64,000 nt of DNA. Source: Phallusia mammillata (Eukaryota). Each line of letters begins with the position of its first letter. The stretch's first letter is position 1. The notes under the pieces were generated by a model. That model saw only the letters and a list, made by a program, of their open reading frames with translations, was not told the origin of the DNA and searched no databases. The stretch lies in assembly GCA_965637545.1 (NCBI GenBank), contig OZ281500.1, forward strand, positions 8,680,001-8,744,000, given 5' to 3'. The position numbers and the translations under genes were made by a program. Shown in pieces: positions 38,190 through 41,100 of the stretch.

Positions 38190-41100
38190 ATGAACTTAGG
38201 CAAGGCATTGTTTTGGGCAGCCATATTTTTCCTCAGTGTTTTTCAAAGCTCAGGTACATGCAACTCTCGTTTGCAGCATCGCGACGTATTTGCTGGACAA
38301 GACGTGATATTGTCATGTGCTTGCGAAAATGCGGTAGCTGCTTCAAGTCGTACAAAAATTAAATTGGACCAGTTGCTTACGGTTTGGACCGTCGCAAACG
38401 ATAGCAGTCCACAAAGAATTGTAGCATACTCAGCGCACAGACAGCACGAGATGCATGATACAAAAGGTACGTTTTGATACTGTGACTTTGGCAAAAAAAT
38501 TGGCAAATCAGGCTATATTTCTTGTGCAGATGCTAACAAGGTTGCTTCTCAAAGCGGCAATGCTGAAGGAGCAAGTTGTCAGTTTCCATTTAGAGTAAAG
38601 GACAAGTTAAACAAGACTAATTATCATTTTTCTTGTTTGGACTCAGGAAGAGAAGATGCCAGTTGCTGGTGCTTTAGTTTGCGAAATATGCATACTACTA
38701 AGTACTGTACTAGATTAGCTTGGAAACTTGGTATTTTTAGCATTAATTAGGCTTGTAGTCGGTTCACTCAACGCAACATTATTGTCTGGTCAGCCCAATA
38801 CTGAATAGAGTATATTCCCATTCATGTTGGATTTCCCTACAGTGCAATATTTAAAGAAAGTGAATTGTTATTTGCAGGTGTTCCACGACACCTGATTTCG
38901 CGTCAGATGAAAAATGGGGATTTTGTCCATGTGCCTTTCCCACAACAGGAGTTCGTTTGTTGGCGGAGTACGGCACATCACCCGGCGACTATTGTCATTT
39001 CCCGTTCAAGTACAAAGGTGACTGCTCGAAAGTTGTTAGTTGTTATTGTGCTTCAAACATTTCCAACAAATTAACCAGTATATTTCAATATCATCTCAGG
39101 TAATGTGTACAAAGAATGCACAACGGACCACCGCCCAAGTGGCAGATGCTGGTGTGGAACCACATATCTGGTCGATGTCGACGATAAATGGGGATTTTGC
39201 CCTTGCGCTAGCGCAACGTTAGAAGGCAACTGGGGAAACTGGGGTGCCTGGACCAAATGTACATGTGGTGAACTGCGATTCAGGTCTCGTCCTTGCAATC
39301 CCCATACAGAGGTAATCCTTTAATAATTGTTGCATCCGACGTAAGTGGACGAACTAAAAGAATATTCTCGTATTCTTTTTTTCTTTTCTTTTTTGAACTA
39401 AAATTAAACCTTACTTTTATTTAGTTAAAAACTGTTCCTACTGGTAGACAAGTGCTGTGTGATGGGGATGCAATTGATATCGAAATGTGTTCATGCGAGC
39501 AGGCAACGCTAATCAGTGGAATTTTAGAACTAATAGACTTGCGGGTGCGCTTCGCTATACGGGGTTAGCGCGAAATGTACTTAACTATACGGTTTTATGT
39601 AAAACAGGGTCGGGTAACTGCAAGATCTGGAGCGTTTGCCGGTAGCAAATCATACATGGTCATCAAAAACATCAAAGTTGCTGATTCCGGTTTGTACCTT
39701 TGTAACAAATTGCATGTACCAAGGCAAGTGCTTTGACAATGTAGTTTTAAAGGTGTGCAAGGTAAATTCATTAATTAGGTTTTTCCTCAGGGCGATGCAA
39801 TACGAAAAGCTTACCCTCAACCGTATGGGTGCATATCACATCAACGTGGTAGAGGTAAAATCGTTGGAGATGGTTCTCGAGGATAAAGGCGACGTACCTT
39901 CCCAGCAACAGGGCCAGTATGGATTGGACTGGTTGGTATGGCATTGGACTAACTGGCAAGCCTGCGATAGATGTGGAATATTCTTTGGGGAAAGAAGAAA
40001 GTACGGTAGGCCACATCGCGTTTGCGACGGTGTTAGAGCGAATTGTAGAAAATATTGATGCATTGCTTAAGGATCTAAATTAAACAACATTTTTGGTTTG
40101 CAGGTTTTTGCTACACAAGTGCCAATCTACCGCGTAACTTACAGGGAAATCGCCTGCCTTGTAAGTCACCGTTGTTGCCAATTGACAAGCGGAAGAGGCT
40201 TGACGCATTTCCAAACTACATGACAATTCAACGCTGCAAATCGAGATGCCCCCGAAAAACCAAAGATTACGTTCTTGTTAAGGCGAAGTCTGGTCAGTGC
40301 GTTTTAAGTATTTGAGTCCATTTATTTTAATGATGTCTGTAAGATATGTGTACTAAATTTACTGCGAACACAACACCAGGTGAAAATCCAGAAATGCCGC
40401 AACCCGCTAACAGAAAGGTAGCCAATGGCGTGAAATCTGCCGAAATCGTGCTTAATTGTTCTGGATCGTCACCTGGACTCCCTGTTTCTTGGCAATTTGA
40501 CGAACTGAATGAAGTTGGACAGACGTGGGCATTGTCACGACAGGAACGTGTTAAAGGATGTTCTGTCAACGCCGAGGATAATCTACATGTACAAAATATT
40601 ATGGTATGTTTATGGATGTTAACAATGCCGAGGTTATCATTTTTTACAAAACCTTGAGGGTTGCATCCTGATCCGTAAGTCGACATATAGATATTTGCAG
40701 TACAGGGGCGTATCCAAAAATTTTTGAAAAAGGGGGAGGGAGAGGGTCCAACATTTCAATTTGGAAAATTTCCCTTATAAATGTGAACTTGCAGCTTTGG
40801 CACGTTTTTCATCTCAAGCCGCTAAGGTGAGCGGCATCGGCTTCTATTTATAAGTGATTTTTTTTCTGAAACTTACAGCTTTGGTACGTTTTTTTAGCTC
40901 AAGCCGCTAAGGTGATTTTTTTAAAGCTTGTAATTTCAAGTTAACTATCTCGCTGACTCAGCAAAAGTGCAGCTGCAAGATAATCGTGACTGTCATGAAA
41001 TTAGAATACGATCGTTGATTTAAAAATAAAAATCGGCAACAACTCCCAAAGGAACTAAACGTCTTTATGAAACGGTGATTCATCTTTCAAGTTGCGCAAA

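Follow-up and report, generated by a model that had tools for sequence, protein, structure and literature searches.

A 64,000-nucleotide stretch of the Phallusia mammillata genome (assembly GCA_965637545.1, contig OZ281500.1, positions 8,680,001 to 8,744,000 of the forward strand; hereafter the window) contains a 10-exon gene on the + strand (38190-41711) whose spliced open reading frame (ORF) encodes a 609-residue type I membrane protein. On the basis of profile comparisons we take this gene to be the tunicate FAM187 (SPE-40/FAM187A/B), and no second member of that family was found in this genome. In the interpretation developed here, an insert of about 185 residues interrupts the first immunoglobulin (Ig) domain of the tunicate protein between strands C' and D, and comprises two fibronectin type II (FN2) modules, similar in type to those of MMP-2 and fibronectin, together with a single divergent TSP1-like repeat. 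The two halves of the Ig domain would nonetheless form a single beta-sandwich with its B-F disulfide, from whose edge the cassette would project. The protein is predicted to sit on sperm in the fertilization machinery with DCST-type partners, as in vertebrates and Caenorhabditis elegans, and the cassette may provide an additional arm that binds a ligand in the extracellular matrix or the egg coat. Taken in its entirety, that is, as a tunicate FAM187 with a cassette in the C'-D connection of the first Ig domain (Ig1), halves closing into one fold and a role on sperm in fertilization, we regard this interpretation as probable.

The initial annotation of this DNA had described a FAM187-like protein, and profile searches bear this description out. 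Database searches were run exon by exon, the joined 609-residue model being used in local alignments only. A profile of the C-terminal part (A1) had one non-tunicate match among 5.8 billion proteins, the Xenopus FAM187A cluster (P0152/P0153/P0154; E 2.2e-16). A profile from which the cassette had been deleted scored 98 bits with Xenopus FAM187A in an alignment that starts at the Ig1 D strand, extends into the transmembrane helix and includes the motif W..W..CDRCG..GE.RK.G.CY. Direct comparison of the window model with Xenopus P0154 by BLASTP, in a small local database, gave 3e-13, and look-alikes of the C-terminal region in a protein atlas include a cluster named FAM187A, these clusters having 368-444 residues with Ig families and no fn2 listed. 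The layout is also that of a type I protein of this family, with a hydrophobic N-terminus, two Ig-like domains (of which Ig1 is split), one transmembrane helix and a short tail; in homologues the second Ig domain (Ig2) is recognised by Pfam ig (E 7.9e-9). The central module between the two Ig domains (39940-40292, exons 7-8) has a TSP1-like pattern, also occurs in Xenopus FAM187A and belongs to no Pfam family.

Where the window protein departs from its relatives is the continuity of Ig1. That this domain is uninterrupted in FAM187A elsewhere, as the initial annotation had stated for the human protein, was supported, as the V-set domain of Xenopus FAM187A is continuous over residues 9-95 and the Ig-like domains of human FAM187A span residues 48-129 and 273-361 (SPARK preprint, 10.64898/2026.05.13.724128). 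In the window protein, about 184 residues (97-280 of the model) separate the C' strand from the D strand. The 240-megabase genome has one copy of the gene, and only this locus matches profile A1, which includes the window sequence, and profile A9, which excludes it and contains Xenopus, in an exon-by-exon search that a divergent paralogue could escape. The Xenopus FAM187A protein as a genome query returned no matches and missed the window gene as well, indicating that this setting was insensitive.

Alignments and exon order agree with the earlier proposal that the cassette lies inside Ig1. In the first half of the domain, all seven aligned sequences, Xenopus FAM187A among them, have the B-strand Cys and the C-strand Trp, most of them also have the C-x-C motif, and a motif F.G..V.L.C.C is common to the tunicates and Xenopus FAM187A. 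In the second half, the Gly and Cys of DSGxYxC are invariant, Xenopus included, and the G-strand pattern is common too. Each half lacks the strands of the other. The insertion can be placed at the C'-D (C'') connection because the lead-in to the D strand, ELIDLRGRV, aligns with KEIDLLTRFHV of Xenopus. A sensible alignment was obtained when each half was aligned by itself. A full-length MAFFT alignment of Xenopus and tunicate proteins had its gap right after the B strand and set the Xenopus C-C' segment on the TSP1 tail; it was taken as a single-long-gap artefact and rejected.

Both halves were compared with solved structures. The second-half profile matches many solved Ig domains along their D-E-F(-G) strands, and exon 6 has a weak Pfam V-set match (positions 61-91 of 109, E 0.0016; 19.1 bits versus a cut-off of 26). 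Matches of the first-half profile are weak, the best two being N-terminal halves of Ig domains, namely those of FcRL5 (E 0.012) and of sodium channel beta-2 (residues 11-55, E 0.14). Closure of the Ig domain was checked with AlphaFold, as the initial annotation had proposed, using shallow alignments of 11-13 rows to which metagenome contigs added only four weak loci, and the outcome was divided: model 1 failed, whereas model 2 matches whole V domains, albeit at low predicted local distance difference test (pLDDT) values. Model 2 (P0156 residues 20-365, 11 rows) has strands in both halves. In a comparison independent of Foldseek against 48,161 solved chains, nearly all of the 50 matches listed are Ig domains, mostly V-type, among them NITR-11, TCR V, TREM-1/2, nectin D1, MPZ, CD8 and the Ig domain of IZUMO1 (Z 7.0-8.8, with 83-97 of ~110 residues aligned over a model range of ~4-338). 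The aligned residues outnumber either half, and the match therefore uses both. We read model 2, together with the invariant residues, as moderate support, short of proof, for two halves that form one Ig fold.

The cassette had been described as FN2-FN2-TSP1, which stands for the two FN2 modules, both above the Pfam cut-off; the TSP1 part falls below its cut-off, yet matches TSP1-repeat proteins. Against Pfam fn2 (PF00040, cut-off 22.2), exon 4 scores 36.3 bits (E 5.5e-9) and exon 3 scores 23.3 bits, with a partial match in exon 2. Each of the two FN2 modules is split by an intron, each complete homologue has two full-length Pfam fn2 matches, and the FN2 modules were folded in AlphaFold model 1 with pLDDT 65-95. 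The TSP1-like stretch aligns with true TSP1-repeat proteins in a library search, and its Cys pattern fits, with a shortened C-x-CG spacing. Identity to three ascidians is 38-68% in the FN2 modules, 70-88% in the linker between them, 30-58% in the TSP1-like repeat and 22-33% in the Ig halves, the best-conserved parts of the protein being the cassette and the central Trp/Cys module. Judged from these alignments, the cassette is under constraint. Each FN2 module (38530-39230) has six Cys (CWC...CPC), one pair more than usual, as do those of P0013, P0018, P0158 and P0156, and among ~170 proteins fetched such six-Cys modules occur only in the eight family members; a third FN2 disulfide is likely.

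The tandem FN2 modules of BSP seminal proteins, which bind choline phospholipids, had been put forward as a functional precedent. This idea is not favoured by a comparison of overall similarity, in which the FN2 pair matches MMP-2 at E 1e-43, in tandem across both modules, followed by MMP-9 and fibronectin (1e-25), versus E 4.6e-7 and one module only for PDC-109. Foldseek likewise matches the FN2 modules of fibronectin and MMPs (E 1e-10 to 5e-9). Because the modules resemble those of MMP-2 and fibronectin far above those of PDC-109, a matrix-protein or glycoprotein ligand would be a better first guess than a choline lipid. No donor gene of the cassette was identified, the best library matches being vertebrate multi-FN2 proteins. 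The nearest other locus in the genome combining FN2 and TSP1 is a kringle-containing gene (L004 1-2670, - strand; G000:C8:6251486-6254155) whose long open frame has no introns, spans at least 890 residues (1782 according to the genome search) and encodes FN2, three kringles and a TSP1 repeat.

In other tunicates, relatives encode all of these parts in a single ORF. Exon 4, searched against 1.84 billion representative proteins, returned proteins of similar length and with the same order of parts. Homologues are present in Clavelina lepadiformis (P0013, 608 residues), Styela clava (P0018, 618 residues) and, via a cluster look-up, Ciona intestinalis (P0158, 623 residues). The window model is collinear with the Ciona protein (41% identity over residues 7-608, E 5e-166) and aligns end-to-end with those of Clavelina (39% identity) and Styela (31%), and at the Ciona intestinalis locus (L019) ten exon positions are identical to those of the window gene. 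Word-based searches with P0018 residues 300-618 found only the query itself, and with P0013 only two relatives. A further homologue, P0156 (508 residues), is encoded uninterrupted on a 1655-nucleotide contig from run ERR6349771 (L018), which joins half-Ig, FN2, FN2, TSP1-like repeat, half-Ig and central module in one ORF. The sequence of L018 is distributed in six blocks over the genomic contigs L020 and L021, and L018 is therefore a spliced mRNA; in the same organism, a single 803-nucleotide exon runs from the second FN2 module (FN2-2) across the second Ig half and on into the central module. Introns of this gene (L020 1200-3652, L021; marine metagenome contigs) are short, start with AG and have YAY triplets on their flanks, which is a signature of the lineage of the larvacean Fritillaria borealis (PMC13326754). 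Because of this match in intron signature, L018, L020 and L021 probably come from a larvacean.

Three annotated ascidian proteins and L018 each unite the Ig halves and the cassette in a single ORF. As read from these genes and predicted proteins, the FN2-FN2-TSP1-like insert is constitutive, and a reading as two genes or alternative exons is very unlikely. By its distribution the insertion is also old within tunicates rather than species-specific, because ascidians of three orders and larvacean-like sequences carry it. The lineage specificity claimed at the outset consequently holds at the level of tunicates (ascidians of three orders and apparently larvaceans), but not for this species alone. 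At the exon 5/6 junction, the Ciona protein P0158 is ~7 residues (VGIYITG) longer than a Ciona fragment (P0015; L019 9298-9822), probably reflecting another choice of donor in annotation.

The functional interpretation derives from recent work on the family. FAM187A/SPE-40 is a sperm membrane protein needed for fertilization in zebrafish, mouse and C. elegans, and FAM187A is predicted to bridge TMEM81-IZUMO1-SPACA6 and DCST1/2-TMDD1; one preprint places FAM187A in the vertebrate SPARK complex and the other describes spe-40 in C. elegans (10.64898/2026.05.13.724128; 10.64898/2026.05.14.723898). By homology alone, a gamete role of the window protein is plausible. The genome contains two DC_STAMP-family loci (G000:C2:22520617-22521456 and G000:C3:27221214-27223062), possibly encoding the DCST1/DCST2 partners of FAM187, and HAP2 was not found in this genome by a search that had no positive control. 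A bolder and rather doubtful extension is that tunicates, being without the vertebrate-only IZUMO1-SPACA6-TMEM81, use the cassette, grafted into the membrane-distal Ig domain of FAM187, as the egg-coat or egg-receptor binding arm of an ancestral FAM187-DCST fertilization complex. If true, a conserved sperm scaffold would have gained a recognition function by insertion of a domain within a domain.

Several observations weigh against the interpretation of a FAM187 with a cassette-bearing Ig1 and a sperm role. The two runs containing this stretch are DNA, with contigs that continue through the introns without joints, and the locus was not found in two small runs presumed to be RNA, so that the gene model has no RNA support within the species. 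The TSP_1 family (PF00090) matches at 14.8 bits versus a cut-off of 21.6, and over profile positions 2-25 only. Exon 1, which encodes the first Ig half, has no Pfam match, and this half contributes just 2.6 bits to the comparison with Xenopus FAM187A. AlphaFold model 1 (Clavelina residues 25-385, 13 rows) folded the FN2 modules only, leaving both Ig halves unfolded at pLDDT <35, and is uninformative on how the halves pair; in model 2 the Ig strands have pLDDT of only 50-68, and its Z scores of 7-8 lie in a range where, as the tool warns, a match can reflect a common arrangement. Lastly, there may be a second FAM187-like gene in Ciona, and expression is not necessarily limited to sperm. A second gene is suggested because quantitative PCR primers for a Ciona robusta gene called FAM187A have no match within three mismatches at the Ciona intestinalis locus L019, a result obtained across species and with primers that may span junctions. 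The Ciona robusta gene of that name (XM_002120001.4) responds to zymosan, and its expression was measured in juveniles that had no gonads (PMC10433773). The lack of RNA support, together with the fact that the ascidian comparison proteins are computer-annotated models, could be taken to mean that the single ORF is a modelling artefact, exon 1 and exons 6-10 forming a canonical FAM187 and exons 2-5 belonging to another transcript or being alternative. The chance of this is very slim in our judgement. The initial annotation was right that simple skipping of the cassette would shift the frame: exons 2-5 sum to 611 nucleotides, which is not divisible by 3 and therefore cannot be skipped in frame, and a direct join of exon 1 to exon 6, read from the sequence, reaches a TAG after 12 codons. 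The cassette exons, moreover, have neither a start codon nor a signal peptide of their own and are in phase with exons 1 and 6, their positions are the same in Ciona, and the spliced L018 unites all parts, with FN2-2 to the central module as a single exon there.

The structural points listed above bear on a different possibility, namely that the N-terminal segment is not an Ig half at all. Ig1 would then be truncated or degenerate in tunicates: the first 70 mature residues would make up a small module of their own, and the remnant strands D-G would pack against something else, such as the TSP1-like repeat or a partner. This would accord with the missing Pfam match of exon 1, the 2.6 bits to the Xenopus N-terminal half, the disorder of both parts in model 1 and the Ig halves being the least conserved regions of the protein. 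We nevertheless consider it unlikely, as the invariant Cys and Trp stand at B- and C-strand spacing, the F.G..V.L.C.C motif is as in Xenopus FAM187A, the N-terminal profile finds its best solved-structure matches in the N-terminal halves of Ig domains, both halves contribute to the whole-V-domain matches of model 2, and the F-strand Cys would be left unpaired without its B-strand partner. The Ciona expression data bear on function instead. They could mean that, with the architecture as described, the gene is a paralogue specific to tunicates that acts in somatic tissue, for instance in immune or matrix recognition, and is not the fertilization factor, and FN2 and TSP1 are indeed typical of matrix and innate-immunity proteins; the unmatched primers leave room for two Ciona genes. 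Against this stand the finding that profiles with and without the window sequence recover only this FAM187-like locus in the genome, the requirement for FAM187 in sperm function from nematodes to mammals (10.64898/2026.05.13.724128; 10.64898/2026.05.14.723898) and the presence of DC_STAMP-family partners. A purely somatic paralogue thus seems improbable to us, although the juvenile and zymosan data leave room for a somatic role. Our preferred interpretation is still that of a sperm FAM187 whose split Ig1 closes around the cassette.

The peptide strings read in the initial annotation all occur in the sequence where it had placed them, and its coordinates of exon 6 and the phases of the exon ends (exon 1 ending in phase 1, exon 6 starting in phase 0) are correct. 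Exon 1 (38190..38466, 277 nucleotides) contains the start codon, a signal peptide (residues 1-22) and Ig1 strands A'-B-C-C', with the B-strand Cys in VILSCAC and the C-strand Trp in LLTVWTV; it has no other copy in the genome. Exon 2 (38530..38668) encodes a short linker and the N-terminal part of the first FN2 module (CQFPF...SCW; Pfam fn2 positions 1-22), which can be aligned in homologues. Exon 3 (38878..39017) continues with the C-terminal part of this module (CSTT...WGFCPC), the linker between the modules and the start of FN2-2 (CHFPFKYK), and is the source of the 23.3-bit Pfam fn2 match. The remainder of FN2-2 and the first half of the TSP1-like repeat are encoded by exon 4 (39100..39311), to which both the fn2 score of 36.3 bits and the TSP_1 score of 14.8 bits belong. 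Exon 5 (39425..39544), in phase 0 at both ends, encodes the second half of the repeat (C.G......C.C), followed by residues that lead into the Ig D strand (ELIDLR); it aligns with homologues, and its lead-in with KEIDLLTR of Xenopus.

Exon 6 (39608..39723), which starts in phase 0, encodes Ig1 strands D-E-F (GRVTARSG...; Pfam V-set positions 61-91). The second Ig half had been assigned to this exon alone, which holds for these three strands, but not for the G strand (AYHINVV), located in exon 7; similarly, the span previously reported to 39723 lies within the gene and does not mark its end at 41711. Exon 7 (39791..40005) encodes the G strand (AYHINVVE), a spacer and the start of the FAM187 Trp/Cys module, and scores 69 bits against a profile that contains Xenopus FAM187A and excludes the window sequence. 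Exon 8 (40104..40292) comprises the remainder of the Cys-rich central module (GFCYTS...RCKSRCP) and exon 9 (40380..40603) the first part of Ig2 (IVLNCSG...VSWQF...NLHVQNIM), a region matched by Pfam ig/Ig_3 in homologues. Exon 10 (41516..41711) completes Ig2 and adds the transmembrane helix (~residues 581-603), a 6-residue tail and the stop codon. Hydrophobicity in a 19-residue window peaks at 3.1 at residues 582-584, and the N-terminus is hydrophobic too.

All exons lie on the + strand, and all introns are GT-AG with the exception of a GC-AG intron after exon 6 (39724-39790), the GC donor at 39724 having a perfect consensus (AG|gcaagt). Intron 9 (40604-41515) contains a high-copy repeat, with a word depth of ~2750 at 41013-41143 versus ~85 in the flanks; near 40795-40920 there is also a local duplication. 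Two coding differences from the window are seen in run X1, a C>T change at 38206 (Ala6Val, in the signal peptide) and a synonymous T>C change at 39140, which look like ordinary alleles. Downstream, a two-exon C19orf12-like gene (42177-42820, + strand; Pfam PF20721, E 8e-11 and 3e-7) starts ~465 nucleotides past the FAM187-like stop codon.

Full-text searches of the literature turned up no account of FN2 or TSP1 modules within FAM187, nor of such modules in an Ig protein of ascidian sperm, and the tunicate homologues are public under the name 'uncharacterized'. FAM187A was recognised as an essential, deeply conserved sperm fertilization factor only in 2026, and the tunicate protein bears on how the conserved FAM187 core is coupled to lineage-specific egg recognition. 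In tunicates, the sister group of vertebrates, the strongly conserved three-module cassette is a candidate for a lineage-specific recognition arm that could be tested in Ciona, for which gene editing and gametes are available. The cassette would also provide a natural case of a multi-domain insertion into an Ig loop with the key residues of the host domain kept, of relevance to protein evolution and to loop-grafting design.

Interruption of an Ig domain by another folded unit has precedents in MXRA8 and some other Ig proteins, in which the chain leaves and re-enters one beta-sandwich. The insert of MXRA8 is another Ig domain, whereas that of the window protein is an FN2-FN2-TSP1-like cassette at the C'-D edge. 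Tandem FN2 modules as in the window protein are found in the collagen-binding FN2 repeats of MMP-2 and MMP-9 and in the gelatin-binding domain of fibronectin, but these modules have four Cys in contrast to six, and the window protein is without a protease or FN1 context. BSP proteins (PDC-109) and ELSPBP1 also present tandem FN2 modules, in a reproductive setting; BSPs, however, are small secreted proteins, whereas the FN2 pair of the window protein is embedded in a membrane protein. The closest likeness is to FAM187A/B of vertebrates and SPE-40/FAM187 of C. elegans, which, like the window protein, have a signal peptide, an N-terminal V-type Ig domain, a second Ig domain, one transmembrane helix and a short tail, and which also share with it the central WxWxxWxxCxRCG..GExR module. 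Known members of this family have 345-444 residues and a continuous Ig1, in contrast to the 608-623 residues of the tunicate proteins, ~185 of which (FN2-FN2-TSP1-like) lie inside Ig1.

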